This document shows, piece after piece, positions 1-32,124 of a DNA stretch of 64,000 nucleotides. Position 1 is the first letter of the stretch. The number at the start of each line of letters is the position of its first letter. Under the pieces are notes generated by a model. That model saw only the letters and a list, made by a program, of their open reading frames with translations. It did not search any database and was not told where the DNA came from. The translations under genes were made by a program, and so were the position numbers. The DNA is from Azolla caroliniana (Eukaryota; Plantae; Polypodiophyta): NCBI GenBank assembly GCA_043228905.1, contig JBHGNT010000017.1:13144001-13208000 (forward strand), read 5' to 3'.

Positions 1-3000
1 ATTCCGGAAAGAGAAAAAAACCAACACCACCAATTCGAAGAAGAGTTCGAACCGAAACGGTTCGAATCGGAGAGGTTCGGAACGGAAAAGAACGTCGGCG
101 ATTGCGACAAGTGAAAACTTACCGAGGAGAATGAGTTAAATCTTGTCGGTGATGAGACAATGTGGGTTGTCAACTCCGAAGCGTCGTTCCACTTGACACC
201 GGATCGGAAATGCTTCTCATTCTACACAACTGGTGATCATGGCTGTGTTCAGATGGGGAATGAAGGTACATGCCGAATTGTCGGCATAGGAGATGTGTTG
301 TTGACGACACCAACCGGATGCAAGTTGTTGCTGAAGGATGTCCGACATGTTCTAGAGGTTTGACTGAACCTGATATCAGTCGCTCGGCTAGATGATGAAG
401 GTTACACGGGTAGCATCCAGAACGGAGTCATGAAGTTCTACAAAGGGAGCCTAATAGTGGCTCGAGCCTGGAAGGTCAACTCACTGTACCTAATGAATAC
501 CCGGTTATGCCGGGAAGAAGTGAACGTAGCATCCAACACTGCCGGTGAGCTGTGGCACAAAAGACCGTGTCACATGAGTGAGAAGGGGATGAAGAGGCTT
601 GCCGAAGACAATCTTATTTTGGTGAAGGACGTGTAACTTGAGAAGTGCATTGACTGCCTGGCCGGCAAGCGAAACTGAACCTCCTTTCGGTCAAGAACAC
701 CGATGAGACGGAATGCACCACTAGAGTTGGTGCATACCGATGTGTGTCAAGTGGACACGAAGTCACATGCCAGATCGCAGTACTTCGTGATGTTCATAGA
801 AGATCACATCAGGAAGATGTGGGTCGCACAACTGAAGATGAAGGATCAAGTGTTATCCGTCTTCAAGGAACTCCACGCGAGAGTGGAAAGAGAAACCGCC
901 CGGAAGCTGAAGGCGGTTCAAGCGGACAACGGACAAAAATACCCGGGGCAGTTCGAGGAGTACTACCGGTTCATCCATTCAGCATGCTAGCACATGACAA
1001 GTTACCCAAGACGTTTTGGGCTGGGGCGCTGACGACGACGACCTATGTGATAAACAGATCACCCTCAATACCCTTGGATGGAGACTCACCGCAGAAAGTA
1101 TGGACTGGTAAGGACGTGTCTTACCGGCATCTGAAGGTGTTCGGGTGTCTCGCTTACGTGCATGTGGCAAAGGACAAGAGAGCAAAGTTGGATCCGAAGT
1201 CTCAACCATACATATTCCTTGGATACGACGATGATGAGTTCGGAGATCGAGTGTGGGATCTGGTCGACAAGAAGGTGTTCCGGAGTCGGGACATAGTCTT
1301 CATGGAAGACATGACCATTCGCGACTGGGAGTCGGAGAAGAAGGTGATGAACCCCGGATCATCCAATGAAAACTAGCTTGAGGACACAAGGATATACCCG
1401 ATTGAAAACCGGATGTTAGCCGGTAACCAGATGACACTCGACGAACCGACCGAAGAAGAAGAAGACACTAGAACCGGACAAGATCCCGAATCGGATTCGG
1501 ATTCGGAACAAACGGAGGAACCAACAGTCATAAACCAAGGACAAAGATATCCGCTCAGAGAGAGAAGAGCCCCTCGTAGATTTCCGGATGCAGAGCATAT
1601 GTTGCTAACCGATGAGGCGGAGCCGGAAAGCTTCGAAGAAGCAAAGAGAGACACCCACAACTGCAAGTGGTTGAGTGCCATGCAGGACGAGATGGATTCC
1701 CTGCATGAGAACCACATGTATGAACTAACAAAATTGTTGCTCCGAAACAAGTGGGTGTACAAGCTGAAACTGGGAGATGCCGGAAACCCGCCGAGATACA
1801 AAGCCCAAATTGTAGTGAAGGGTTTCCAGCAGAAAAAGGGAGTAGACTTTGATGAGATCTTTGTCCCGATAGTAAAGATGACATCCATCCGGACAATATT
1901 GGGAATAGTGGCAAGCATGGACCTCGAGGTAGAGCAACTAGAAGTCAAGACAACATTCCTCCATGGTGTCCTTGAAGAAGAGATCTACATGCATCAACCG
2001 GAAGGATTTGAGAAGGAGCACCTGGTGTGCCAGATGAAGAAGGGCTTATACGGACTGAAGCAAGCTCCCCGGCAATGGTACTGGAAGTTCGACTCCTTCA
2101 TGACCGACCAAGGGTTCCACAAGACGCAGGCCGATCACTGCGTGTTTGTGAAGAAATTTGACGGAGGAGATTTCCTGATACTTCACCTATATGTGGATGA
2201 TATGTTGATCGTTGGACGAGACGAAGGCAAGATCCGGATGCTGAAGAAGGCTTTGAACCGGACCTTCTCAATGAAGGACTTGGGTCTAGCAAGATAGATA
2301 TTGGGAATGCACATCATCCGGGACCGGTTGAAGAATCTGTTGTGGTTGTCACAAGAGAAGTACGTGACAAAGGTGCTTCAAAGGTTCAACATGTTGGAGG
2401 CGAAACCGGTCGGATCGACACTTCCAAGAAATTGCAAGTTGTCCGGAAAGCAAAGCCCGAAGACAAAGGCAGAGAAGACGGATATGATGAAGATACCATA
2501 TGCCTCTGCTATCAAGAGCTTGACGTATGTGATGGTGTGTACCCAGCTGGACATCAGTTACGGTGTAGGAGTAGTCAGCCAGTTCATGAGCAATCCCGGA
2601 AGAGAGCATTGGAACGTGGTGAAGTGGATACTCCGGTATCTGAAAGGCACCTCGAGTATGTGGCTCGGGTTCGGCTCCGGTAATCCCCAACTTGACGGAT
2701 TCACGGATTCAGATATGTCGGTTGATGTAGATACCATCCGGTCTACATCCGGATATGTCATGACTTATGCAGGGGGAGCTGTTTCGTGGCAGTCGAGGCT
2801 GCAGAAGATGGTTGCGTTGTCAACTACAGAGCCGGAGTACATGGCAGTTGTAGAAGCCGGCAAGGAGATAATCTGGATGAAGGACTTATCGGAGAGCTAG
2901 GAATCCAACAAGTTGAATATCGGCTCTATTGCGACAATCAAAGTGTCACGCACCTTGCAAAGAACGCGACCTACCATTACCGGACGAAACATATTCAGTG

Positions 3001-3176
3001 GAGGTACCACTGGATCACGGAGAGAGTAGAAGATCAATAGTTCGTGTTGACGAAGATCCACACGGAGGAGAATGGGTTGGATATGCTGACCACAATGTTT
3101 ATGACCGACAAGCTGGACGTGTGCCGAAAGCGGATCGGGTTGGCGAGACATCCCATGCCGGAGTGAAGGGGGAGAT
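1..3176 (+). mobile_element. Degenerate Ty1/Copia (Tnt1/Tork-like) internal region: protease-integrase-RT-RNaseH, 5' end outside the window
   Basis: ORF fragments contain WVVNSEAS (protease), LELVHTDVC (integrase), YGLKQAPRQWY and LYVDDMLI (RT), SRSTSGY-like RNaseH. Many stops and frameshifts. PPT GAGTGAAGGGGGAG at ~3161-3174. Confidence 0.93.
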
Positions 3177-3733
3177 TGTTGGGAAATCGGTCCCTCCGGA
3201 TGGGATCCAGTTATGAATGAAGATGGACGCGGTGAGAACCGGATGGACCCGGCATGAACCAGAAGAGATCCGGAAACAAGATCGGATGGACCTGGTGAGA
3301 ACCGGAAGAGAAGACATATTTGTAAATATGTTTTGAGTAAGCCTATTGAGGCTATATTTGTAAATAGCCCTAAGCTCATATAAGTATAAATATGACTTAG
3401 GGCAAACACTTTATAGAGGTTGTTGCCATACTGTTGTTTAGATAAATGTTGTACAGAGAGAGAGTGGAGATACAGAGCGATACTCTATTGTAACTGCCGG
3501 TTAGCGAAGATACAAAGCTCCAGATCATTGCCTTCGAGGCTCTAATTGTATCTTTCTCCTATACTTATAGGTGGAGTTTGTGGGCTCTCATGGTTTTTCC
3601 CATTTAGGGTTTTCCACGTAAACATCCTGTGTACTCTCTTTTGGTGTACGTGTATTCATCTCTATTCCCATTTCTGTGTTTGATTCTCATTGAAGTGTTC
3701 AAGACTCGGTTGTGGCCAAGCTATATTCTACGC
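3177..3733 (+). repeat. 3' LTR of the Copia at 1-3176
   Basis: Starts TGTTGGGAAATCGGTCCCTCCGGATGGG right after the PPT and resembles the LTR of the intact element at 57838-63241. Right end is approximate. Confidence 0.8.
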
Positions 3734-5156
3734 TATTCACTACACTACCAAGTGTGGAAGTCGAAGATAAGGGTCATGCTCGTGGTCAAAGATCTCTGGC
3801 TACCGGTACAGTTCGGGATAAGAAACTGGACAAGATCAATGCCATGACATGGGCGGTGATGCACATGAAGACGACGACATACATCCGGTGCTTCATCGAC
3901 ATGAGCTTGTACAACAACTTCAATGAAGAAAGTAAGCTCATGTGCTTTGGGAGAAAATCGGCACCATGCTGGTGAGTAAAAATGTTGTAAATCGGGTTTC
4001 GGCACCATGCTGGAAGTTAGTGACACTCTGGTACCAGGACGGATCCAGCATGACGGAGCATATGAACACATTTCAGGGGCTCATAAATCAAACAACTTTG
4101 CTTGAAGTGCCTCTAGCCGACGAGGTACTTGCATTACTCCTACTCGGTTGCCTCCCGGATAGTTGGGAGACGCTAGTTGTCACTTTGGGCAATGCTGGGC
4201 TGGAAGGAAAGCAGTAGTCCCTAGCAAAGGTAAAATCAAGCTTGCTAGACGAAGAAGCTTGCCAAAAGGATCAGGAGTCCGGAATCGATCCAAAGGCCTT
4301 GGTCACGGAGGATGACCATTACCGGGGAAGAGGCCGGTATTGGAGTCCCCAAAATCGGGACAAGTTGGGGACAAGGTCAAAGTCAAGGGGGAGGCCTACT
4401 TGCTTCTACTGTGGGAAGCCGAGGCACTTCTAGAAGAACTGTCGGCATTTCTGGAAAGAGAAAGGGACCGACACCACCGATATGAAGAAGAGTTCCAACA
4501 GGAGAGGTTCGGATCGGAAAGAAATGTCGGCGATCGCGACAAATGAAGAAGAATTGATGCTCATTGCCAAGGAGAATGAGTTAAACCTTGTCGGCGATGA
4601 GACAATGTAGGTTGTCGATTTCGGAGCGTCATTCCATTTGACACCAGACCAGAAATGTTTCTCATCCTACATAGCCAGAAATCACGGGTGTGTCCGAATG
4701 GGGAATGAAGGTACATGCCGAATTGTCAGCATAGGAGATGTGTTGTTGACAGCATCAACCGGATGCAAATTGTTGCTGAAAGAAGTCCGACACATTCCAA
4801 AGGTTTGGTTGAACCTGATATTAGCCGATCGGCTAGATGATGAGGGCTACACGGGTAACATCCGGAACAGAGTCATGAAATTCAGCAAAGGAAGCCAGAT
4901 CATGGCTCGAGCCCAGAAGATCAATACATTGTACCTGATGCATGCCCGGATATGCTGGGAAGAAGTGAATGTAGCATCTGACTCTACCGATGAGCTGTGG
5001 CACAAGACACTGTGTCATATCAGCCAGAAGGGGATGACAAGACTTGCCGAAGATAACCTCATTCCGGAGGTGAAAGGCGTGCATCTTGAGAAGTGCACCG
5101 ACTGCCTGGCCGGCAAGCAAAACCGAATCTCCTTCCGGTCAAGACTACTGATGTAG
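3734..5156 (+). mobile_element. Degenerate Copia gag-protease-GAG_pre-integrase fragment (host of the preceding element)
   Basis: VWKSKIRVMLVVKDLW (gag N-terminus), LPDSWETLV, CFYCGKPRH zinc knuckle, ELWHKTLCHIS; interrupted at both ends. Confidence 0.88.
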
Positions 5157-5799
<643 letters not shown>

Positions 5800-5829
5800 A
5801 TACGCAATGGTGTGCACCAGCCGTAATTG

Positions 5830-8036
5830 CTGGAAGGATGTATTGATGTTGCAAATAGAAACATTGCCTCCTTGTGTCCTTCTTCGCGTAGTTGATGGAG
5901 TGAAATGGTCGAAACTCGATGAGTAGATTCTTGGGGTTGTCGATATTGGACTTCTCTTGTTCTCCAATCTATGTTTGGATTATGTAATTCAAACCAAGGT
6001 AATCCCCGAACAATGGGATGCTCTGGACTACTAATTATATTAAATGATACCACACACACAAAACTACCTAGGACAACTTGAATGGGTTCGGAGTCTTCTA
6101 CAATATTCTTGGAAGCAATGGGACGACCATCAATGACTACTACAGATGCGGGGCAAGGAAGTTTTCTTAAGGATATCTGAGAAGCTTGGGCAAAATTTCG
6201 ATCCATAAAACAGGAATTGGCTCTGGAATCTAAAAGTGCTAGGACGTGTATTGGAGGAGTACTTTTAGTACTAACCATGACTTGGGTTAAGAACACATTG
6301 CTAACTTGCTTTGAGGGAATGGAACCACTAATGGGTTGTACAGATCTAGGGTTGTCCAACCAAACAACTCCTATTTTGGCTGGACTTAGTCGTTTAACTC
6401 TTCTTCTATTTGGCTAAGGATTTCAAATTTGTTTGAGATACTTGGGCTATTAGTACTATTAATACTATTAGACACGCCTAAGGGAAGAATTGATTCGGGT
6501 TTAGTACAGGTTACGATTTGATTTACCTGTCTTCTTGGCTTATGGGGACAGTTGATTGCAATATACCCTGGTCCACCGCAATAAAGACATAATCGATTTG
6601 CATGTCGACGTTGCTTTTCTTCTTCTGATAACGGGCCACGTCGACGCATGGTGTCGATCTCCATCGGTGTCAGAGTATTTGCTTGAGATACGCCTCGTGC
6701 AAACGGTTTAGTTGCGACTAAGGCATATGTGGGCTCCGGCCTAGGGCGTGGTATTTGTAATTGACGTTCAGAACGCCGTTCGAAAAGGTGGTTATCGCAT
6801 CGGACCGCTCGACTGATTGCCTCTATAAGAGACTTTGGTTATTCGGGGAAGGTTAGGAGTAAATCTTTGACATCGTTTCGCAGGCCGTAGCGAAACTACT
6901 CCATTAGTGCCTAATCATCCCAAGGGATATCTGAGGCGAGTAGACGAAAATCCGCCACGTAGGTAGAGGATGGACGATCACCTTGACGCAATCGCCGGAT
7001 TTTGTTGATCGTCGTCCTGATGTTGTCTGTATCTCCAAAGCATGCTTTAAACTTGCTAATAAATCCTTCAAAGTTATTAAACAAGGGCGATTGTTTTTCT
7101 AGAAGCGGAGCGAACCATGCCAAGGCTGAGCCGCTAAGCAACGTTCCTATTAGGCCAATTCGGGATGCATTAGTGGGGTATCGGGAAGGATGCATTTGAA
7201 TGACTAAGCGTACCTGATTAAGAAATCCCCTGAATTGCGATAGCGTTCCATCGAATTTCACAGGAAGTCCAATCTTGGGCTCTTTATGAAATCCTTGGGG
7301 ACTTGATCCTTGTTGTTGCAACGTTGTGATGGTTGCTTCGAGTTGTTGTACACGTAACGCTAACCCCCATGTTGTTGCTGCGTTTGTTGTTTTTCTAGAG
7401 CGATTTGTTGAAGGTCCCCTAACAATCGCTGGTTTTCTTGTTCCAAGGCAACAAATTTTTCTTTTAGACCCTGTAGCTCGGAGAAAACGGATTGATATTC
7501 TTGGGCGCTAACAATAGCCATAGTATTGGAAAAAAGGGGTAAGAGGATGAGGGAAACCGAAAAGAAGACTAGAGAAGAATTGGTTCAAACTATCAGGAAT
7601 AGTACTAAAACAGAGAGAGAATTAATACTAGAGAAGGGAAGTACTATTAGTACTAAGAGGACGGGACTACGTAAGACTCCCGAGAGAGAGGAAAGAGAAG
7701 AGGAGAGAGAGAGACATAGCGAGGATGAGAGAGAGACAGATGATAATAACAGATGATATATTATAGGAAGAGTAAGTACAAGATGGCTATGAGGCTTAAG
7801 ACTAGTGTTGAACCAATTTGGTTCAACATAATGCCTTGTGCCTCCATTTATAGTGTTCTCAGGAGGAGTCCTGAAGCTTCTAGAATGTTCCAGAGAAATC
7901 TGGAATATACATTAATTTCCTATAATAAAACTTAAATGAAAATAATATCTTACGTATTACAATAGATGGTATAATGGTCAAGAGCTCGACCCATATAACA
8001 TAAGGTCATGGGTTTGAGTCTTGTCATATCATGACA
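5830..8036 (-). mobile_element. 3'-truncated Ty3/Gypsy chromovirus (Tcn1-like): probable LTR ~7806-8036, gag, protease
   Basis: PKIGLPVKFDG...ALAWFAPLLE retrotrans_gag, MEIDT..RLCLYCGGPGY knuckle, ALLDSRANSCF protease. Minus strand starts TGTCATGA at 8036. Confidence 0.85.
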
Positions 8037-18743: not shown

Positions 18744-19880
18744 CAAAGAGAATACGCAAGGTAAAAGTATATTCACAAAGGAGAAAGACTCAACGTTATA
18801 CAAGGTGGGAGGAGGGTGCTTTATGTAGTCACCCTCTCTCTTCATTAACTACAAGCCTCATGGAGCATGGGGAATGTGAAAGCTAATAAGTTATGTGTCA
18901 TAGAATATGATTCTATGACTCATACTAAATGCTAGAATACAAAGTGGTGACATAATGGTGACTCTTGACCGTTGGAGTGTCTCTTCACTCTCAAGGTGAG
19001 TATACACACTAGACCAAGTTGAGCTTGATTCTCAACACGCCCCCTCAAGCTCAAGTCGGGTCGATTTCATACGGTATCCGAAATCCGCTTCAACTCACTT
19101 TCCGGAGTCCGCGTCGCTTTATGTAGAGTTGCGGAGTTGCGGAGTTGCGGAGTCCGTGCTCCAGCTTGCGTTGTGCGAAGTCTGTGCTTCGGCTTGCGTC
19201 TTTCTTCGCAGCTTTGCGCGGTAGATCGGCTCTTCGCTGCTTCGTTGCGTGGTTGCAGAATCCACGCGTTATTGCGTAATGTCTTTAGTACTCCCCCTCA
19301 ACCTTGGCAGGTCAGGGATCGTCAATCCGAGATTGGTCATGAATTGCCATAGGCCATAGCTTGTCGGCTCCTAAGGCTTTAGTGAAGATGTCGGCCGTTT
19401 GAAGATTGGTGCTAATGTGTTGTAGGTAGACATCGCCAGCTAGAACGCGCTCTCGGATGAAGTGATAGTGCAATTCGATGTGCTTTGTCCGCACGTGGAA
19501 CACCGAGTTCCGAGCCAAATAGATACTGGGTGAAAGCATGCGAGTGGAAACAATTAGCTATGTCCTTGACATAGCTAATTAGCTATGCAAAAAGCTACCA
19601 TTGATATATAGTCATTTTAGTAAAAAGCCATCATTAATAAATTAAGTATGCAAAAAACTACCATTGAAAATACTAGAGTGTTTTAATTACATATGTAAAT
19701 GAGTGCCATAAATGTGCAACATAAATTGATGTGTGCACCATAAATGTGTACCATAAATTATATATCGAATTCCTAGGTCCATTATGCATGATCCTTTGCC
19801 ACATCACGTAGGCCATCTCTAGTTGAGTACTGTGGGTTAGTTGCTACCACTGTTGCTAAACCCTATCGAGTCCACCTGCC

Positions 19881-20800
19881 GCCACTCTACACTGAGGGGC
19901 CGCTTCTGTGCGTTCCAAGCATCATCAAAGAGCTGCTCAATCTAACGGGGTTCTCTTCTCTGTGACACTCTACACTCAGGGGCCACTACTGTGCATTCCA
20001 AGCATCATCAAAGAGCTGTTCAATCTGACGGGGTTCTCTTCTCTGTGCCACTCTACACTCAGGGGCCATTACTGTGCGTTCCAAGCATCATCAAAGAGTT
20101 GTTCAATCTGAGGGGGTTCTCTTCTCTGTGCCACTCTACACTCAGGGGCCATTACTGTGCGTTCCAAGCATCATCAAAGAGTTGTTCAATCTGAGGGGGT
20201 TCTCTTCTCTGTGCCACTCTACACTCAGGGGCCGATGTTGTGCGTTCCAAGCATCATCAAAGAGTTGTTCAATCTGACGGGGTTCTCTTCTCTTTGCCAC
20301 TCTACACTCAGGGGTTGCTACTGTGCGTTCCAAGCATAATCAAAGAGCTATTCAATCTGACGGGGTTCTCTTCTCTTTTCCACTCTCACTCAGGGGCCGC
20401 TACTGTGCGTTTCAAGCATCATTGGTAACTGTTCAATCTGACGGGGTTCTCTTCTCTTTTCCACTCTCACTTAGGGGCCGCTACTGTGTGTTTCAAGCAT
20501 CATTGGTAACTGTTCAATCTGACGGGGTTCTCTTCTCTTTTCCACTCTCACTCAGGGGCCGCTACTGTGCGTTTCAAGCATCATTGGTAACTGTTCAATC
20601 TGACGGGGTTCTCTTCTCTATGCCACTCTATTCTCAAGTGCCTTCTATGTGCGTTTCAAGCATCATCGGTAACTGTTCAATCTGACGGGGTTCTCTCCTC
20701 CATTGCCATCATTCTATACTCAGTTGCCACTACTGTCCAGTCCCGGATTGCTTCCACATTTCGATTTGACGGAGTTCACTCATCCAACGGCAACATTCTA
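19881..20800. repeat. Subterminal minisatellite, about 10-11 units of 83 bp shifting to 80 bp
   Basis: Unit CCACTCTACACTCAGGGGCC...CAAGCATCATCAAAGAGTTGTTCAATCTGACGGGGTTCTCTTCTC repeated head to tail upstream of the transposase ATG. Confidence 0.95.
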
Positions 20801-21031
20801 CACTCAGTTGTTGCCATTGGTCGGTCTTGGATCGCCTCCTCAACTGTTGGATCCAACGGAGTGAAATCCTCTACTGTTCGGTCTTGGATTGCAATAACTT
20901 TTCTGTCTATTGATTATCTTGTGTATTGTTGTGTCTAATCTTGTGTATTGTGTGGAATATTTTTGTGTATTGTTGTTGCCCATAGCCATCTTTAATACTT
21001 GTTTTTTTTTCTGGAAATTTAGGGTTTTAAC

Positions 21032-24000
21032 ATGTCTAGCCAAATGGAAGGGGAAGAAGGGTGTTTAGAATTACCCCTCAATGATCATAAGGATAGGGAT
21101 GATGTTATCAGGACACAACAAGCCATACGAAACTATTGGGCAGAAAAAAAAAGGAAACATCGTCAATTGTTGAAGGATACGAAAGCCACACTCAGTAAAG
21201 GTAAGGATAGTTTAGCTGAGAATGTAAGTAATGCGACTACCATCATAGAGAGAAAGGTTGTAGACTATTTCAATGTTCAAACCAAGCACATCAGCAATGA
21301 AGAAAAGAAGGTAGTACTTTATGGAATATGTAATGATCCATCGATAAAGGACTTAGTTGATTGTGATGGTCTTAATGCAAACATATCATCTATTTTAGTA
21401 AATAATCTTCGTAATAGTTTCGTATCCATGAGCAGGTCAGAAGATGATCTTGTCTTAAAAAGGTCTAGTCTAATGATGTTACTTAATAGTGATGTTGACG
21501 ATATAAACATCAGTGAGCTATCTAAGGTAATTGGTGTTAGTAGAAAAACAGTGTACAATACAATGAACCGTATAATTTCCTCGGGTGAAGGAACTAGTCT
21601 ACTAAAGCTAACTACAAGATGTAAGCCAATGACACCCATAACATTTGAAATCAAGGATGTAATCACAATGTTTTGGACTAATGAGAGTAGGGTTTCACCC
21701 AATAAAAAGGATTTATGCAGGAAACGTGTTGGAAGAAATCAATACGAGGAGCATCCCATTCATCTTGTCAGGTATTTACATTTATCTCAACATTTGTTTT
21801 GACTCTACTCGGAAAGTTAATTAGCTCAGTTAGCAGAAAAGCTAATTAGCTTATCAGTTACATTTACCTCAGTTAGCTACTAGGATCGCTACTACATAGG
21901 TAACTAGCTACTCTCAATAGTTACTACCATGATAGCTAATTAGCTATTCTCAATAGCTAATTTAGGTACTACCAGATAATTAGCTGTATTGCTAGCTAGT
22001 TAGCTATCATGGTAGCTAGTTAGCTATTTCGTTATTACCAGCTAATTAGCTACTAGGAAAGCTAATTAGCTACCATGATAGCTAATTAGCTACTATGATA
22101 GCTACTACATAGGTAACTGGCTACTCTCAATAGCTACTACCATGATAGCTAATTAGCTATTCTCAATAGCTAATTTAGGTACCACCAGATAATTAGTTGT
22201 ACTGGAAGCTAGTTAGCTATCATGGTAGCTAGTTTGTTATTTCGTTATTACCAGCTAATTAGCTACTAGGAAAGCTAATTAGCTACTATGATAGCTAATT
22301 AGCTTACTAGGATAGCTAATTAGCCACCGTGATAGCTAATTAGCTACTAGACCAGCTAATTTGCTACCATGATAGCTAATTAGTTAGGATAGCTAATTAG
22401 CCACCATTATAGCTAATTAGCTACCATGATAGCTAATTAGTTACTAGGACAGCTAATTAGCCACCATGATAGCTAATTAGCTACCATGATAGCTAATTAG
22501 TTAGGATAGCTAATTAGCCACCATTATAGCTAATTAGCTACTAGACCAGCTAATTAGCTACCATGATAGCTAATTAGTTACTAGGACAGCTAATTAGCCA
22601 CCATGATAGCTAATTAGCTACCATGATAGCTAATTAGCTACCATGATAGCTAATTAGCTACTAGACCAGCTAATTAGCGACCATGATAGCTAATTAGTTA
22701 CTAGGAAAGCTAATCAGCCACCATTATAGCTAATTAGCTACTAGACCAGCTAATTAGCTACCATGATAGCTAATTAGCTACTAGACCAGCTAATTAGCTA
22801 CCATGATAGCTAATTAGTTACTAGGAAAGCTAATTAGCCACCATGATAGCTAATTAGCTACTAGACAAGCTAATTAGCTACCATGATAGCTAATTAGTTA
22901 CTAGGAAAGCTAATTAGCCACCATGATAGCTAATTAGCTACTAGAGCAGCTAATTAGCTACCATGATAGCTAATTAGCTACTAGGACAACTAATTAGCTA
23001 CTAGGACAGCTAATTAGCTACCATGATAGCTAATTAGCTACTACGACAGCTAATTAGCTACCATGATAGCTAATTAGCTACTAGAATAGCTAATTAGCTA
23101 CTAGAATAGCTAATTAGCTACCATGATAGCTAATTAGCTACTACGACAGCTAATTAACTACCATGATAGCTAATTAGCTACTAGGACAACTAATTAGCTA
23201 CTAGGACAGCTAATTAGCTACCATGATAGCTAATTAGCTACTAGAATAGCTAACTAGCTACTAGAATAGCTAATTAGCTACTAGGATAGTTAGCTAGTTA
23301 CGAGAATAACTAATTCCCCTTTATTACGCAGGTCGATTTATTTATTAGGTTCAAACGAATGCATCCAACTATCAAAGTTCAACTACGAACATTCGAGTCT
23401 CTCAAGCCACACTTTGTGAGACGCTTAAAGGATCGATACACATGTTGTTGCATTTACCATGTACAGATGGGTTTTCTGAAGGACTCTGTTAATCTACTAC
23501 GTCACCATAGTGCATCCCTAACTAATACAGTTTGCACATGTGGGTGCCCAATCTGTCGATCAAGCCCGCAAGAGGAGTGTAAATCATCTGAGCACGTTAT
23601 CTCTTCCATGAGTTATTTATTAGATTCAATATTGTGTCCGAGAGAAACTGACGCTATCTTCCATATTCATAAATGTGTCATGGGTTTATGTCAAGATTGT
23701 GGCCCTACTAGATTTAGGTGGTGTCCAAATGAATTGAGTAGTGAAATATTGATCTCTGTGAAGTTATTTGAGTCAGTGAACACCAATTTCGAAGGAAAGG
23801 TGTGTAAAAGAAAGGATCTAGTTCGGAAGATGCTTAAACCAAGGGATTTGGTGTCTCTGTTTGTAGTATCTCTAGGAAAGTTCATTAAACACAACTTCAT
23901 TTATTCATGGCAGGCCCATCAGTTTAAGACTTGCATATCTGATTTCCCAAATGATGTAGTAGTCTCAGTAGTAGATTTCGCAGAGAATTATACTTTCAAG

Positions 24001-25173
24001 CAGCAGAATGAAATTCAATCTATGCATTGGTGTTAAGTTCAGGTAACCATTTTTGTGCACATAACATATTTTCGAGTTTCAGGTGATGTTAAAAAAGTAA
24101 TTCATTTCTTTATTTCCGATGATAAGAAGCATGATACCTTGTTCGTCCAACACTGTTTTAAGTTACATTGGCAGTGGTTATTAGCTCAACGTTTGGAGCT
24201 TACTCAACATTGGGTCTGGTCTGACGGAGCTGCGTCACAATTCAAGGCTCGACGTCCATTTTATTTTGTGGGGAGGTATCCTGCTATAACAGGTTTGGAG
24301 ATGAGATGGAATTTTTTTGGGTCTGGCCATGGTAAAGGTGAACATGATGGTGCAGGGGCTGTTATAAAGCGGGCACTTACCCATGAACAACTAAAGACAG
24401 ATGGTGTGCACATGAATTGTGCATCACATGTAGTTGAATTTTTAAGAACAAATATGTCAACGAGTGCCACAGGTGTTTATTCCTCGCAAGTCCGAGATAT
24501 CAAACGTGAATTTTGGGAAGTGAAGATAGATGAAGTAAATAGGGAGAAGACCTGGGAGTGCCAAGGAATTCCCGAATTGCGAACTCTGCATGTTGTTCGC
24601 GGTTATTCCAGGTTGGATGGTCATTGTATTGCGGTTAGAGAATTGACTTGTTTTTGCTTCCATTGTGTGCAGGGAAATTGGAGATATTGTCTAAACAAAG
24701 CATACATTCAGAATTGGGAGTATCACACTCTGAATGATAAGGAAGCAGTTGATGGAGAAACAGGGCAGAATGCTGACTTCACATATGAGGGACTTGGAGA
24801 TACTTTGAGTGATGTCCTGAACGTTGGGGATAACTTCGCTGTAAATGTTGAAGAAGGCAATTCAGAGGGTGCTGATTTCTATATATTAAAGTGCACGGTT
24901 AGTAAACAGTGTGCAAGGCAGAATATTGTAGATGCATGGGGAAATTTTGTATCTGCCGGGACATTCTACATCGAAGGCATTTTTTATGCAAAACTAGATG
25001 ACTACGAATATGTGTACAGGCTGTTAGAAGACAAACCAGCGGCGTATATGTACTCTCATTTGGTCAGATGCATCAACGTCCCAATGTCAGAATACAATAG
25101 CTGCTCCGGTTTATACACTGTTGGTGCTAATGTGTATGAATGTATTTACAATAGTATGCCATGGAATTTGTAG
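21032..25173 (+). pseudogene. Sola2-like DDD transposase, two exons (21032-21771, 23332-25173), disrupted
   Basis: Motifs TCCCIYH, VDFAENY..QNEIQSMHW, FISDDKKHD, WSDGAASQFK, FFGSGHGKGEHDGAGAVIKR. GT..AG intron 21772-23331. In-frame TAA at 24034-24036 and an exon phase mismatch suggest decay. Confidence 0.85.
21820..23313. repeat. Intronic satellite of the palindrome TAGCTAATTAGCTA with 6-nt variable linkers (20-bp period)
   Basis: Dozens of units such as CCATGATAGCTAATTAGCTA and CTAGACCAGCTAATTAGCTA. Confidence 0.97.
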
Positions 25174-25520
25174 CTACAAGTAGCACTTACCATGTTCTCT
25201 TGTAAAACAAACATGTATTTCGCGAAAACAGTTAAATAAATTCGTTTGGAATCAATTTCTTGTATACAGTCTGCTTTTTGTGCTTCTTTCTCAATAAAAT
25301 CATGTCTTTTTTGTTAAGTTTTAAGTTATAAGTTATAGCGAAATAGTCATCAGTAGCTAATTAGCTGTACAAATGCAGCTAATTAGCTGTCAATAGCTAA
25401 ATAGTCATCAATAGAATGAAATCAACAATCTGCAACATATTCCTCAAATTACACAGTAGATAAGTACAGTGGGAACAAGTAATTAAATTCTTCATTGAAT
25501 AATGTCATCTCTTTACATAT

Positions 25521-28500
25521 TTATAAATTACCATTGGAAATGTCTACAAATCTCCTATAAACAACTAAGCTCTTGCTAGTCAGTGGAACGAGTCTACATA
25601 TATTATCCGCATATTGAACTCGGTATGGAGTCCACAACCATGCACCTAGTTGGCAGCTCACTATTTGCACCAGGTACTGTTCAGGCATTTCCTCGGGTAG
25701 AATGAGACAGCATCTCCGAATATTGAAGTAGTGTCGGAAATGTTCTGTATCCAAAATCAATGTATTGTCGACATTATATTCAGGCCAAGTAGCCCAAAAA
25801 TCAGAAAGTCTCTTGAATCTTGCAGCTTCCATTTGCTCACAATTTTCTCGTGCCCATTGACCTTTAAAACGACTTCGCCATTTTGGGAAGAATCTTGCCA
25901 AACACTTCCACACATCTGATTTTGGTTTTTCACTCCAAATAAACAAATCAAAGTATTCCACAGCCCACTCTAGAAATTGATTTGCGTCCCTCCTTGGTTG
26001 CATATATCTCACACTCATCAAGACTTTATCAAGCTCCAAGATCAAGGCTCTTCTTTCGACTTCTAGTGGTTTAGGTTTCCAATCCTGAAACTGAGCCGTT
26101 GTTACACCATTTTCTGGTAGGATACGATCAATCTCAATCAGCTCAGGTTCGGCTGACACAACTGGTGTCCTTTTCCTCTTTAAACCCCTAGTCGACTGTG
26201 TTGGGCCTAGCTTCACATTCTGGTGCTCTTGTTTTGTCGACTTAGTTATCAATCCTTGGATTACCTCAATGCATGTAGCTACTGATCTGCTCGATATCAG
26301 TCCACTGGTATCACATGCTGCATCTACCTGCAACACCAAGTCATCCGTGCTACATGCTGCATCTACCTGCAACACCAAGTCATCCGTGCTACATGCTGCA
26401 TCAACTTGTGTGACCAGATCACTTGTGTCAGTTGCTACATCTACTTTCAAGATGGGGCCCTTTAAACATGCCGCAACATCAACAGTATCCACACTGCCAT
26501 TGGCCTTACGAGCAATAGAATCAAACCCTTTAGACTCTGCAACATCAGAAAACACCAACATATTCACACTCACAAAGTAACTAATAGTCTCACAAAACAA
26601 TATCCTGAACATCAAAGAGTTTCAGTCATAGAGCAACACTCTTCAAATTATCTTGGAAAAACATCATAGAGTTCCATTACATAATGTGGATCAAGCAACA
26701 ACCAATCTGAGGTTTTACTTGTCCAACAGGATAGTAAAACTTCATAAAACCCTAGCAAAATCCCTAAGCTAACAATCATATCCAACTAAACAGTATTTCG
26801 CTCCACTACGTCTGGGCCCCTTGACCGAGTAACTGGTCTTGTTCCCGATCGTGGCCCCTTCTTCAGCCTTTTTCTGGTTGGTTCCCCATTTAGCCTTGCT
26901 TCTAGGACCCAATGCGCAAGTGTGTCCTCCTCCGACAACCTTCCCATTGCCTCAGCAGCTAATTGCACATCAGCCGTTTCTTGAACTAGCTTTTCAAGTA
27001 CAGAGGGATCTGTTTGGACATTTTCAGTAGTTGGGCTCGGTGGGGTGGAATCAAGGTCTTGAGACTCGAAGAAATGTTGCATCAAGTGTTCATAAACACT
27101 GTTGTTGTGAACCTCAGTTTTACATGTTGTTTCCACTATTTCATGGCATTTCACATCGTTGCCTAATTCAGTACACTGTTCCAAAAGAATAGGGTGCAGC
27201 TGATCTGAAGGAGATGTGATAGCAGGACTCTTACTTTCAGCCACATTGGCAGTAGTATCCTCATCTGTTGCAGCATCATCAGCACCAGACACATCATGTG
27301 CCGTCCTTAATCCACAAGATTCTACAATAACATGACAGTTATTTAGGATAGCTAATTAGCTACTTTACTAAACTATGGTAGAAGCTAGGATAGCTAATTA
27401 GCTAGTACGATAGCTAATTAGCTAGTATGATAGCTAATTAGGTACTTTACTCAACTATGGTAGTAGTTAGGATAGCTAATTAGCTACTTTACTCAACTAT
27501 GGTAGTAGCTAGGATAGCTAATTAGCTACTTTACTCAACTATGGTAGTAGCTAGGATAGCTAATTAGCTACTTTACTAACTATGGTAGTAGCTAGGATAG
27601 CTAATTAGCTACTTTACTAACTATGGTAGTAGCTAGGATAGCTAATTAGCTACTTTACTAACTATGGTAGTAGCTAGGATAGCTAATTAGCTACAATGAA
27701 AGCTAATTAGCTACTTTCTCAACTATGTAGTAGCTAGGATAGCTTATTAGCTACTAGGACAGCTAATTAGCTGCCAGTAGCTAATTAGCTACTAGGATAG
27801 CTAATTAGCTACTTTACACAACTATGGCAGTAGCTACTAGGATAGCTAATTCGCTAGGATAGCTAATTCGCTAGTAGGATAGCTAATTAGTTGCCAGCAG
27901 CTAATTAGCTAGTAGGATAGCTAATTAGCTACTAGGATAGCTAATTAGTTGCCAGTAGCTAATTAGCTAGTAGGATAGCTAATTAGGTACTTTACTCAAC
28001 TATGGTAGTAGCTAATTAGCTAGTAGGATAGCTAATTAGCTACTAGGATAGCTAATTAGCTGCTAGTAGCTAATTAGCTACTAGGATAGCTTATTAGCTA
28101 CTTTACACAACTATGGCAGTAGCTAATTAGTTACTAGGATAGCTAATTAGTTGCCAGTGGCTAATTAGCTAGTAGGATACCTAATTAGCTTTTTTACACA
28201 ACTATAGTACTAGCTAATTAGCTAGTACCATAGCTAATTACCTACTAGGATAGCTAATTAGCTAGTAGGATAGCTTATTAGCTACTTTACACAACTATAG
28301 TAGTAGCTAGGATAGCTAATTAGCTACTATGGTAGCTAATTAGCTACTTTACTCAACTATGGTAGTAGCTAGGATAGCTAATTAGCTACTTTACTCAACT
28401 ATGGGAGTAGCTAGGATAGCTAATTAGCTACTTTACTAACTATGGTAGTAGCTAGGATAGCTAATTAGCTACTTTACTAACTATGGTGGTAGCTAGGATA

Positions 28501-31089
28501 GCTAATTAGCTACAATGAAAGCTAATTAGCTACTTTCTCAACTATGTAGTAGCTAGGATAGCTTATTAGCTACTAGGACAGCTAATTAGCTGCCAGTAGC
28601 TAATTACCTTCTAGGATAGCTAATTAGCTGCCAGTAGCTAATTAGCTACTAGGATAGCTTATTAGCTACTTTACACAACTATGTCAGTAGCTAATTAGCT
28701 ACTATGATAGCTAATTAGCTAGTAGGATAGCTAATTAGTTGCCAGTAGCTAATTAGCTACTAGGATAGCTAATTCGCTAGTAGGATAGCTAATTAGTTGC
28801 CAGTAGCTAATTAGCTAGTAGGATAGCTAATTAGCTTTTTTACACAACTATGGTACTAGCTAATTAGCTAGTACCATAGCTAATTAGCTACTAGGATAGC
28901 TTATTAGCTACTTTACACAACTATGGCAGTAGCTAATTGGTTACTAGGATAGCTAATTAGTTGCCAGTGGCTAATTAGCTAGTAGGATAGCTATTTAGCT
29001 TTTTTACACAACTATGGTACTAGCTAATTAGCTAGTACCATAGCTAATTAGCTACTAGGATAGCTAATTAGCTAGTAGCTCATTAGCTGCCAGTAGCTAA
29101 TTAGCTAGTAGGATAGCTAATTAGAAAAGACTAAGCTTATTAGCTACAGTATGGTATACCTGTTAGTTTTCTCCACTCATTTGGTAGAGTTGTACTGCAA
29201 TCTCCCAAACAGAATGCAGCAATTCAACAGGCATGTTGAAAACAAAGCAGATGGTATGTGTGGTTGCATGGTTGTAGGTGAACCAACAAAGACGCAGTTT
29301 TGTCCTCCACACCTAACCCGCAAGCGATGCAACGTGCTTGAACTGTCAATAAATCATTTTCTGGTTCTACTTCATTTGGTAAGGGAGCAAGAATGTTCAG
29401 GTCCAAATCTTGTCTGGTCCTTACCATTCCCTCCACAAAATGTAGCTTCTTCTTAAGGCAGCTAACTACCTGTTCTTAATGAATGTATTGTTCCTTCAAC
29501 GCAACAGAGAAATTTACCGATTAATTATTCTTGTTGTTGAAAGATACACCAACTTTGCTCAGGAATCGTTAACTTACTTGAAGCTTATCCAAATTGTAAT
29601 CTGCAACAGTATTTACACCTAGAAGGTCCAGGTTCATTGAAAGAACCTGGATCTCTATTTGCAGTTCTATTTTACGCTGGGGATCCAGTGGCCCCTCTAA
29701 TTCAAGCTCCTGTTGCGCAACCTATTCCAGATAATGCTTGATTAGCACATTTTACCCGTTATTTATAACACAATCACATACCAGCAAAACAATAGTTACC
29801 TGAATCTTATTTCTAATTGTTGTAACAGCAGAAGTAACTTTGCTCTCCATTGCAGAAGCCATTGTGGCTTTCTCTAAATCAGTCTTAAAAAATGCCAATG
29901 TCTCACAGGCTTCATGGACATTTTTTAGCATATAGCTAACCAATGTCTCACCTGTATCATCGACATTGGCTTTCCTTGGGTGTCGGTGTGGTGTATGCCC
30001 CCGGTCTTGCTGGGAGTCGGCAGTTGCATCAACAGCTGCCATGCTCCAAAATCTGTCTATTTTTTGTGCCAAGGTCCCCATCTTTCGGCATCTTTTTACC
30101 GATGCCTCACCATAGACTGCCCAAGCTACCCTATACATTTTAGGGTCTCTAGATTCCTTCGCTGTTTTGCAGTACTCATATGCAAATGCTCTAGCAAATG
30201 AAACTGACAACTCATTGTTGACTGGGATCTCCTGATGAACTTTCTGGTGCAGTCTCATGCAGTCATCGTACAAGTCGGCTCGTACATGCTTCAGCTTGAC
30301 CTTGCCTTTGACTCTAGGCACTGTATATACTGTCATCCAGTCTATATCACTGATCAATTTATCACTTAGGACAGCAGGGTCAACACCCTCGAGTGACAGA
30401 CCATAGGTGTTGTGGAAGTCCTCCTTTGTCTCGCAAAATTTTGCGAAGTTTAGCACTCTCGTATACGGAGGAACGAGCCATCTAAAATATCATTTCAGAA
30501 ATCAGAAATAGTGCAAAATCAGAATATGTGAGAATCAAAAACCCCAATCAACAACAACAAAAATGGTGCAAAATCTTTAACTTAGCAAATCAGAAACCCT
30601 AATCATAATTTGTATTCAGAAAATTGAAATCAGAAACCCTAATCAAAATCTGTAATCAGAAGTTTGAAATTAGAAACCCTAATCAAAATCTGTAATCAGA
30701 AGTTTGTAACCAGAGACCTTATTCAGAAATTCTAATCAGAAATTTATAATCAAAAACCCTAATCAGAAATTTCAATCAGAAACCCTAATCAAAAATTTCA
30801 ATCACAAACCCTAATCAGAAATCCTAAGCAGAAATTTATAAACAAAAACCCTATTCAGAAATTCTAATCAGAAATTTATAATCAAAAACCCTAATCAGAA
30901 ATTTCAATCACAAACCCTAATCAGAAATTTCAATCACAAACCCTAATCAGAAATTCTAATAAGAAATTTATAAACAAAAACCCTAATCAGAAATTTCAAT
31001 CAGAAACCCCAATCATCACTAAAGACAGGATTAAACACAAAAAAAGTAATATAAACACACCTGTTGCTACTCCCCGATTTGCGAGACAT
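25521..31089 (-). CDS. Transposon accessory gene(s): unknown N-terminal domain, coiled coil, RING-H2 finger, acidic linker, FCP1/NIF-like HAD domain (at least one in-frame stop)
   Basis: Phase-compatible GT-AG exons 31089-31061, 30481-29800, 29721-29578, ~29490-29160 and 27321-~26800, then ORF ~26536-25521 (this last join is unresolved). CIAC..PCNHTYHLLC..CLGDC; LILELDKVLM..FLEWAVEYFDLFIWS..NTLILD. Confidence 0.72.
26312..26420 (-). repeat. 39-bp coding tandem repeat (VDAACSTDDLVLQ)
   Basis: Two exact units plus degenerate flanking units in ORF 25521-26615. Confidence 0.9.
27345..29146. repeat. Second intronic TAGCTAATTAGCTA satellite with longer linkers (e.g. CTTTACTCAACTATGGTAG)
   Basis: Fills the predicted minus-strand intron 27322-29159. 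Confidence 0.97.
30535..31015. repeat. Degenerate AAACCCTAATCAGAAATT tandem array (telo-box-like) in intron 1 of the accessory gene
   Basis: More than 10 AAACCCTA(A) motifs interspersed with ATCAGAAATT. Confidence 0.85.
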
Positions 31090-32124
31090 CCTTGTATGGG
31101 ACTCCAAGGACTTCGCCCTATTCGATTTTGGGGAAATATGAATCGGCACCAAAGTTCAGACAGTAGTCAAAAAGAAAAAACAAATGTTTGGGGTTTCTGT
31201 AACTGAAACATACCTGGACGATGATCGAGCGGGTTCTGTGTTGTAGCTCTCAATCTGCAATGTCGATTTTTTGCTGTTGCGGGAGCTACGTCTGCGTTCG
31301 TGCTCTGAGTACTCCATCTGCGTTCAAAATCAGACTTAGGCTAAACAGGAAATTGATGACATTGAAGTCGACCTTAGATGATGGTGATATTCCCCAAGTT
31401 CCACTACGTCTGAAACAGAAGTTCAAATATTTGAGTTTTTTCATAAATTAGTTTTTCAAATATTTGATTTTCCCACAAAAAAGACTAGCTAAACAAATAG
31501 CTAATTAGCTATGGCCATTTTAGTAGCTAATTAGCTATAATAGTGTTTCCACTCGCATGCTTTTACCCTACTGCTCATGTTGTCGCAGTACAGGGAAGTC
31601 GGATCCTTGATTGGTACGCCCAGATCCTTCAAAATCCTCTTGAGCCATACGGCTTCACACGCAACTACAGCTGCACCCCTGTATTCCGCTTCTGTACTCG
31701 AAACAGCGACGGTGGGCTGCTTCTTGCTACTCCAGGATATTGCTCCGCTGCCGAGGGAGAAAACAAATCCGGAAGTTGATCTTCTATCAGTTTTGTAGCC
31801 GGCCCAATCGGCGTCTGTGTACCCCTCGAGTCGTATTGGCATCGCGGTCTTGTAGAGGATGCCGCAATCCATTGTGCCGCTCACGTAGCGTAGAACTTAC
31901 TTAGCGCAATCCAAGTGAGTATCACGCGGTGTTTGCATGAATTGGCTAAGGAGACCGACCGGATAACTCAGATCGGGTCATGCGATCGTGAGGTAGATGA
32001 GACTCCCGATGAGTTGCCGATACTGAGTCGGCTCACACGCTGTCGTAGTGTAATTTGTACACTACGTGAAAAATTACATTTTTGGTCTCTCCGGATAGGA
32101 CATGGAGTACCCGGTGAGAACCGG

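Follow-up and report, generated by a model that had tools for sequence, protein, structure and literature searches.

Background

To our knowledge, Sola2 is among the least studied of the eukaryotic cut-and-paste transposon superfamilies and no Sola2 element has been shown experimentally to transpose; the Sola superfamily itself reportedly goes back to Bao, Jurka and Kapitonov in 2009. Plant DNA transposons with more than one gene include MuDR (convergent mudrA and mudrB), En/Spm (TnpA and TnpD), VANDAL21 (VANC) and PIF/Harbinger (a Myb-like ORF1), and we know of none among these that combines a RING finger with a phosphatase-like domain. Sola2 elements make target site duplications (TSDs) of 4 bp, and the only second gene known in them is Fanzor1, in dictyostelids (PMC3627910). 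In plants, Sola2 is the most abundant class of DNA transposon in Cupressus sempervirens (10.64898/2026.07.23.736688) and makes up 0.6% of the Cryptomeria japonica assembly (PMC11539532), so that a plant Sola2 lineage is not new in itself. Here we describe a 12-kb element in a stretch of 64,000 nucleotides from Azolla caroliniana (assembly GCA_043228905.1, contig JBHGNT010000017.1, positions 13,144,001 to 13,208,000), the whole of which is referred to below as the window. The element very probably belongs to Sola2 and carries, convergent with its transposase gene, an accessory module that comprises a RING-like finger and a domain resembling the NIF (FCP1/SCP) phosphatases.

With described Sola2 transposons the element shares a DDE transposase of ~850-890 amino acids (aa), motifs in the same order, a 4-bp TSD, short GGG ends and, with some families, a length of 10-15 kb. 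It differs from them in its plant host, in its convergent RING/NIF module, in large arrays of the subterminal palindrome within its predicted introns, and in telo-box-like motifs at both 5' ends. The dictyostelid Sola2-Fanzor1 elements likewise hold a second large gene within 12-15 kb and make 4-bp duplications, but theirs is a TnpB-like Fanzor1 that varies among families sharing one transposase end (PMC3627910), whereas the RING/NIF protein of the window family diverges together with the transposase. The likeness to the multi-gene plant transposons lies in an element-specific accessory protein and subterminal repeats, and in a convergent gene pair such as that of MuDR; the superfamilies and the accessory proteins are unrelated. 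An earlier note on this DNA had taken Sola2 to be normally transposase-only and mainly a matter of animals and protists, statements qualified by the dictyostelid Fanzor1 gene (PMC3627910) and by the abundance of the class in conifers (10.64898/2026.07.23.736688; PMC11539532), respectively. A search of the literature mentioning Sola2, covering searchable papers with Repbase entries lying outside it, returned no RING/NIF accessory gene and no account of plant Sola2 anatomy.

A mobile element within a copia-type retrotransposon

Window positions 19528-31568 constitute a single mobile element of 12 kb for which both terminal inverted repeats (TIRs) and the TSD were located:

19524-19527, no strand: left TSD, TACT, adjoining the left TIR; from empty-site reconstruction
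19528-19552, plus strand: left TIR, GGGTGAAAGCATGCGAGTGGAAACA; from a TIR search of the window, and the point at which similarity to locus L001 stops
31544-31568, minus strand: right TIR, GGGTAAAAGCATGCGAGTGGAAACA on the minus strand; ends of L003, L004, L007 and L008, which have unrelated flanks
31569-31572, no strand: right TSD, TACT, adjoining the right TIR; from empty-site reconstruction

The inverted ends are 25 bp long, begin with GGGT and agree at 24 of 25 positions, with one mismatch. Matches to the TIR number two in the 64 kb, against 0 expected by chance, and both lie at the ends of the element. Deleting the element and one TACT in silico and translating the minus strand yields an unbroken copia-type pol frame, and the restoration of this frame establishes that the insertion and its 4-bp duplication are real, as the earlier note had proposed for TIRs and TSD alike. 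Furthermore, in five independent insertions found in public metagenome contigs, similarity is lost at the exact terminal bases and the flanks are all different, with the left end confirmed by L001 and the right end by L003, L004, L007 and L008. Since independent copies end at identical bases, the family must be mobile and its termini correctly placed. The extent of the family is indicated by a single DNA run in which 2,274 contig pieces of 88-100% identity span the whole of 23300-27340, and by the presence of at least half of the transposase words in 12 runs from several studies, the runs holding such words being labelled as leaf or plant metagenomes; together these point to many diverged copies.

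It is likely that 19528-31568 represents one full-length, though defective, member of a Sola2-type cut-and-paste family present in many copies in a land plant, lodged inside a copia element. This level of confidence attaches to the explanation as a whole, comprising the element, its dedicated accessory module and the mechanism proposed below, except that the function suggested for the accessory protein is rated lower.

The retrotransposon that received the insertion has its pol/RNase H frame on the minus strand at 19312-19527 and 31573-31884. A natural non-autonomous form of the family is seen at L008 (211-3157), a derivative of a diverged subfamily in which an internal deletion has joined window position 29485 to 24309, fusing the right end and the N-domain exon of the accessory module directly to the middle of the transposase.

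A Sola2-type transposase, inactivated in this copy

The transposase amounts to ~850 aa, made up of an exon with a helix-turn-helix (HTH) and a zinc-rich DDE exon:

21032-21771, plus strand: exon 1, N-terminal region with HTH; sub-threshold Pfam matches to HTH_11 and HTH_29, proposed donor CAG/GTATTT
21772-23348, plus strand: predicted intron, holding a palindrome array; acceptor TTATTAG/G at 23348/23349
23349-25173, plus strand: exon 2, Cys-rich region and DDE core; catalytic D at 23974-23976, D at 24223-24225 and E/D at 24340-24348

The donor at 21771/21772 and the acceptor at 23348/23349 would join exon 1 in frame to the long open reading frame (ORF) that follows, and homologues of exon 1 are found in L001, L017, L019 and L022. 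The DDE core matches no family in a Pfam scan, and a protein-atlas search points to DUF7869 only. A full HMMER search recovered 2,844 relatives of the transposase, and those with a named source come from a nemertean, the alga Klebsormidium, conifers (Cryptomeria, Taxus), ferns, liverworts and a sea cucumber, with 23-33% identity to the animal relatives. The ratio of non-synonymous to synonymous substitution rates (dN/dS) is 0.21-0.31 in the DDE core, significantly below 1; that of the HTH exon is 1.06, calculated from 23 changes only.

Assignment to Sola2 draws on motifs, duplication length and termini. Transposase sequences of Sola2_DFa-2 and Sola2_PPa-1 are printed in the supplement of PMC3627910 and, in a side-by-side reading of motifs rather than a formal alignment, share five motifs in the same order with the window: R.(D/Y)TC..C, DF.EN, F.SD...H, WSDG...FK and HGK..D. 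The corresponding pairs, published sequence before window, are NRTDTCPYC and DRYTCCC, MDFKEN and VDFAEN, FSDVLNH and ISDDKKH, WSDGAKHFKS and WSDGAASQFKA, and YHGKSDVD and GHGKGEHD. The two catalytic aspartates stand 87 residues apart in the published Sola2 sequences and 83 in the window, and the distance from the second D to E/D is ~40 in both. Exon 2 thus contains DFAENY, WSDGAASQFK and GHGKGEHDG, so that all of the motifs picked out in the earlier note (DFAENY, WSDG..QFK, GHGK..DG) are present. The TSD is perfect in the window (TACT) and in L023 (TGTG), and agrees at 3 of 4 bases in L017 and 2 of 4 in L022; the termini of all four of these delimited subfamilies begin with GGGT, followed a few bases inward by GCAYG. 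On these grounds the element very probably belongs to Sola2, and the identity first suggested for it is upheld by the collinear motifs, the 4-bp TSD and the GGG termini.

The window copy itself lacks the intact reading frames that autonomy requires. An in-frame TAA at 24034-24036 interrupts transposase exon 2; at the same codon L001 reads TCA within an intact ORF of 585 aa, and position 24035 is C in nearly all reads and contigs from other copies, from which it follows that the stop is private to the window copy. A CGA to TGA change at 29224-29226 truncates the RING exon of the accessory module where four other copies have CGA, and is likewise private to the window copy. With a stop codon in each, both genes of this copy are broken, and it could move only if intact copies were to supply both proteins in trans.

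Beyond the window, the NCBI model of an uncharacterised protein at the Cryptomeria japonica locus L021 (BSEH01000004.1, LOC131074642) is a relative of the transposase at 33% identity; since it adjoins a gypsy element, the annotation has probably mistaken a transposon gene for one of the host.

The accessory module

The accessory ORFs lie on the minus strand, convergent with the transposase, and are listed here in the direction of the proposed gene:

31061-31089, minus strand: proposed first coding exon, with ATG at 31089 and donor CAG/GT
30482-31060, minus strand: predicted first intron, with a 13/26-bp array at 30588-31015
29800-30481, minus strand: N-domain exon of 227 codons, of no Pfam family; W.PP.Y ... 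YGLS..G..P ... FARAF ... VAWA
29578-29721, minus strand: short exon, heptad-like (coiled-coil-like) by eye; continuous with N-domain and RING in the L017 ORF
29160-29469, minus strand: RING-like finger exon, CIAC...PCNHTYHLLC...C-x3-C, truncated by the TGA at 29224-29226; homologous to the RING of L017 and L022
27322-29159, minus strand: predicted intron, taken up by the second of the palindrome arrays; RING exon in phase 1 at its 3' end, the remaining 2 nt of the codon coming from the exon that follows
26834-27321, minus strand: acidic exon, ending in a basic stretch resembling a nuclear localisation signal, TRKRLKKGPRSGTRP; the ORF itself continues to a stop at 26786
25521-26534, minus strand: NIF (FCP1/SCP)-like ORF or last exon, Pfam PF03031, with a KRKR basic cluster and ELDKV as motif I

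All of the proposed junctions have GT/AG sites and compatible phases, the in-frame donor and acceptor that would join the acidic exon to the NIF exon are conserved in the window, L001 and L002, and the reading frame of the NIF ORF extends without a stop to 26615 and has an ATG in frame at 26610-26612. Splicing of both the transposase and the accessory gene is predicted from these phase-compatible sites together with the uninterrupted ORF of a relative: in L017 the N-domain, coiled-coil-like segment and RING form a single ORF of 551 aa, which supports the exon joins proposed for the window. Database searches and structure models were run exon by exon, and the transposase tree used the read-through sequence with X at the stop codon. 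Within the N-terminal part of the NIF ORF, 26313-26402 is a perfect repeat of 39 bp x 2.3 that encodes TDDLVLQVDAAC units, the number of which varies among copies (a 13-aa indel in the alignment).

The earlier note had described the second gene as RING/FCP1-like; of these two domains, only the latter passes a Pfam cut-off. The NIF domain scores 30.8 bits against PF03031 in the window, 31.7 in L001 and 38.2 in L017 (profile positions 1-152 of 160), all above the cut-off of 21.8, and with the FCP1/SCP phosphatases it shares the motif II Ser, motif III Lys and motif IV Asp, which are kept across four lineages. It departs from them in motif I, which reads ELDKV in the window family, DLQGV in L022, DMNGV in L017 and DLNGV in L023 and never the canonical DxDx(T/V), in some 25 fewer residues between motifs I and II in the window family, and in a divergence that places it beyond profile reach of solved structures. 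Phosphatases of the HAD class require both motif I aspartates for turnover, and the non-canonical motif I therefore suggests a binding or trapping module in place of an active CTD (C-terminal domain) phosphatase; the protein should not be filed as an active FCP1/SCP enzyme. A metagenome scan with the NIF alignment yielded eight short loci, all from one study, and no new lineages.

The RING assignment stays below threshold. The best Pfam match in the window family scores 14 bits (E 0.03), short of the cut-off of 27. Of the ligands, the first six follow the pattern C-x2-C ... C-x-H-x2-H-x2-C, but the last pair is C-x3-C. In the liverwort homologue from L020 the last pair has the canonical C-x2-C spacing, and the match, at E 0.002, again falls short of the cut-off. 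Neighbours of the RING exon in the protein atlas all belong to RING families, with scores of 0.83-0.86 that serve as leads only, and the C.H.YH..C signature is the most conserved part of the module across lineages. Pfam scans detected no DNA-binding domain in the accessory protein.

Conservation and selection

The module recurs in diverged copies of the family and in more distant elements. Amongst the nearer copies, L001 has a convergent layout identical to that of the window, L002 contains the acidic and NIF exons at 67% identity, and L003-L008 possess the 5' accessory exons; copies of the NIF ORF are 97, 88, 82 and 67% identical, and the N-domain exon is represented by 20 diverged copies. 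Pairwise dN/dS is 0.39-0.46 for the NIF domain (p<0.002), 0.18-0.41 for the N-domain exon (at dS, the synonymous divergence, of up to 0.9, with 0.18-0.22 at dS of ~0.85) and ~0.5 for the acidic exon, and for the module overall 0.18-0.57, significantly below 1 (p 2e-3 to 6e-9). The dN/dS check among copies called for in the earlier note thus returns purifying selection.

More distant elements retain the same architecture. L017 is an element of 12.4 kb with a 52% identical transposase, perfect 22-bp GGGT... ends, a convergent full-length NIF ORF and the 551-aa ORF described above, whose N-domain is 33% identical to that of the window (3e-16). In L022 the transposase is 48% identical, all accessory parts are present between its own GGGT... 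termini, and the N-domain exon is 45% identical (1e-34). A tblastn search gave no direct match between the NIF ORFs of the window and L017; L022 provides the link, its NIF ORF matching both the window (1e-14) and L017 (8e-9). L023 is an element of 9.7 kb with a 39% identical transposase, perfect 32-bp ends, its TGTG duplication and an N-domain and RING gene, and no NIF was found inside its delimited limits. In the liverwort Calypogeia fissa (L020), where the transposase is 37% identical, a convergent N-domain ORF (...FGLPNEGLNP...VNWAAYA) accompanies a RING ORF with CPIC...CGHTYHASC...CYAC in canonical spacing.

In the transposase tree a streptophyte clade is recovered next to unnamed animal homologues (100/100), and one subclade (97/96) holds every NIF-bearing element. 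The NIF part is thus confined to a single transposase subclade, and N-domain and RING form a widespread core. L019, with a 59% identical transposase, falls inside the NIF subclade, so that its want of a NIF ORF is, as judged from the tree, a loss or deletion; it does have an exon analogous to the acidic exon. The ends of the L019, L020 and L021 loci were searched for and not found.

When the NIF ORF and the N-domain exon were compared with 5.8 billion proteins, only unnamed ENA metagenome proteins were returned and no named host gene, and all contigs fetched for these matches proved to be further copies of the element family. Because the module is kept in copies, is under selection, is present in distant elements and met no named host gene in these searches, it is, on the comparative evidence, dedicated to the element and not a one-off capture. 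The dedicated module inferred in the earlier note accordingly recurs in diverged copies and in L017, L022 and L023, with the liverwort L020 a probable further case, and the outcome that would have told against it, namely a second gene present in one copy only and matching a host gene, is not what was found. Of the content ascribed to the module, the N-domain and RING core proved widespread, the NIF part restricted.

Two side observations concern relatives. Outside the delimited L023 element, positions 2017-6301 hold a stand-alone NIF ORF (DLNGV, with its own ATG) and a fragment of a DUF7869 transposase, probably what is left of another relative with a NIF part in that genome. In L019, three tandem minus-strand ORFs of 70-100 aa (...LFLFQGPSTLG.ANESS..VENAGDNVD...) occupy 5977-7100 in place of the palindrome arrays.

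Repeat arrays and sequence motifs

Arrays of several kinds lie inside the TIRs, in keeping with the element-specific arrays first noticed there:

19572-19585, no strand: subterminal palindrome TAGCTAATTAGCTA, left; from an exact-copy search
19881-20700, plus strand: 83-bp tandem array of 10 units, upstream of the transposase start
21019-21027, plus strand: telo-box-like TTAGGGTTT, 4 bp upstream of the transposase ATG
21873-23315, no strand: palindrome array in the transposase intron; from repeat and exact-copy searches
27344-29124, no strand: palindrome array in the accessory intron; from repeat and exact-copy searches
30588-31015, minus strand: 13/26-bp array with 10 x AAACCCTAA (TTAGGGTTT in gene sense), present in L003-L006
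31498-31537, no strand: two copies of the subterminal palindrome, right; from an exact-copy search

The window contains 61 exact copies of TAGCTAATTAGCTA, every one within the element: three are subterminal (one beside the left end, two beside the right), and the two predicted introns hold all the others. Shorter palindrome arrays occupy the same positions in L001 (transposase intron) and L003 (accessory intron), and in L017 arrays with a related but different core, GTAGCTAC, lie between the RING ORF and the NIF ORF. Folded computationally as RNA, the palindrome array of the window's transposase intron forms long hairpins (-384 kcal/mol, z = -21). The 83-bp array is expanded in the window copy only, L001 having ~2 units.

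The third array accounts, at 30594-30978 in the first accessory intron, for 10 of the 12 AAACCCTAA motifs of the window, and L023 has telo-box-like motifs near the 5' ends of both its genes (7671, 7743, 7956 and 16013). AAACCCTAA and its complement in gene sense may be plant telo-box promoter elements, perhaps borrowed from host genes. Between the convergent 3' ends of the window's genes, 25335-25414 is a short degenerate array of ATAGCTAAATAGTCATCA, ~4 units with a TAGCTA half-site.

A proposed mechanism

The HTH region of the transposase would bind the inverted ends and the adjacent TAGCTAATTAGCTA palindromes, and the enzyme would excise and reinsert the element through staggered cuts of 4 bp. 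The intron arrays could then be amplified copies of the binding motif, tolerated because they appear to lie within introns, and might offer extra sites, act as a sink that titrates protein, or aid synapsis and assembly; once transcribed, they would be expected to form a long hairpin RNA. The accessory protein, predicted to be nuclear on account of its two basic clusters, may form oligomers by way of its coiled-coil-like segment and serve as an adaptor of RING type, perhaps as an E3 ligase, whilst the altered phosphatase-like domain, in the one subclade that has it, would bind a phosphoprotein without hydrolysing it and thereby support transposition or expression. Through such contacts the protein may aid expression, counter silencing or guide integration. 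That the accessory function is one of RING adaptor and host manipulation is put forward tentatively, at somewhat less than an even chance.

A broader and more doubtful reading, which we think unlikely as it stands, is that a clade of streptophyte Sola2 elements, probably extending from liverworts to the plant of the window, carries an ancient protein resembling RING ubiquitin ligases, joined in one subclade by an altered CTD-phosphatase-like module, and uses it to manipulate a host phosphoprotein, with the palindrome arrays as the cis partner. Candidates for the phosphoprotein would include a silencing factor or the tail of RNA polymerase II, and the result would be expression maintained or integration guided.

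Alternative explanations

Several observations weigh against the account given above. Membership in Sola2 rests on motifs, TSD and termini, and not on a phylogeny with Repbase references. The RING of the window family falls under every Pfam cut-off and ends in C-x3-C; AlphaFold2 models of the NIF domain (from an alignment of five sequences) and the N-domain exon (22 sequences) are unusable, with pLDDT of 49.9 and 41; and profile comparison of the NIF domain with PDB brought up no NIF chain, the one hit being a chance match to an interferon (E 0.046). In L020 the accessory similarity is weak (pairwise E ~1e-3) and the element limits, although searched for, were not found; L019, known from a single contig, lacks a NIF ORF there, and in the Cryptomeria locus L021 no accessory gene turned up within 10 kb. 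Joining the acidic exon to the NIF exon would depend on a weak donor and on the latter of two AGs in a tandem acceptor, and three runs guessed to be RNA contained no splice joint over 23300-27340, only short unspliced DDE and NIF pieces that may be DNA; of the convergent spliced second gene originally proposed, the convergent minus-strand ORFs are thus present and the splicing went unseen in those runs. Finally, NIF ORFs with an ATG of their own (window, L022, L023) may constitute a separate third gene.

If the element were instead a distinct, unnamed DDE lineage of DUF7869 type that resembles Sola2 only in motifs and TSD length, the failure of Pfam to return a hit, the atlas match to DUF7869 only and the low identity to animal relatives would all be accounted for. 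This is nevertheless improbable, as five ordered motifs and their spacing agree with Sola2_DFa-2 and Sola2_PPa-1, and the GGG termini fit the GRG ends given for Sola2 in the earlier note. Added to this are the 4-bp TSD that PMC3627910 states for Sola2 and the placement of conifer proteins in the same transposase clade, conifers being plants for which the standard-tool repeat tables of genome papers show abundant Sola2. Far less probable again, and rejected here, is the notion that fragments of host genes were captured once or recently, after the manner of Pack-MULEs or CACTA elements, to give a second gene with no role in the element. NIF and RING folds are common as host domains and the NIF part is missing from L019, L020 and L023, but the module keeps its place and orientation in copies as much as dS 0.9 apart, accompanies transposases only 39-52% identical, has dN/dS significantly below 1 and met no named host gene in the protein database search.

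The organisation of the module is a closer matter, and it is quite possible, though we lean the other way, that the RING protein and the NIF-like protein are encoded by two co-oriented genes, giving an element with three. The acidic exon stops 0-8 codons from a conserved TRSRGP in all three copies compared, the NIF ORFs of L022 and the stray L023 copy start with an ATG immediately before the domain, the sole in-frame splice uses a weak donor, and the RING gene occurs without a NIF ORF in L019, L020 and L023. Against a third gene stand three points: an in-frame donor and acceptor are conserved among L001, L002 and the window; residues 1-25 of the NIF ORF do not vary, even in the copy at 67% identity, a pattern that a splice-acceptor region would produce; and promoter evidence for a separate transcript is wanting. 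As to function, the accessory protein might be a DNA-binding cofactor like TnpA, acting on the palindromes to pair ends or block methylation, with no enzymatic or ubiquitin-ligase role. Each subfamily indeed has its own repeat motif (TAGCTAATTAGCTA in the window, the GTAGCTAC core in L017) alongside its own diverged N-domain, which is of no known family; yet the accessory protein has no detectable DNA-binding domain, the HTH sits in the transposase, and it is the C.H.YH..C RING signature that is best conserved across lineages. A cofactor of this kind therefore seems rather unlikely, and the RING-adaptor function remains the tentative preference.

Significance

In searchable papers, plant Sola2 amounts to lines in repeat tables. 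The presence of a conserved accessory gene, under purifying selection and diverging with its transposase, implies that the transposase alone is probably not enough for such elements to transpose or persist in plants, and concrete proteins together with a DNA motif, TAGCTAATTAGCTA, are now at hand for testing. For the annotation of large, conifer-type genomes, the ORFs of such 10-12 kb elements may pass for host genes, as exemplified by LOC131074642. Were the broader reading of an ancient RING protein, joined in one subclade by an altered phosphatase-like module, to prove true, it would stand as a new kind of host-manipulation system encoded by transposons, with a role like that of VANC or of viral suppressors of silencing, and the question bears on how DNA transposons cope with silencing in plants.

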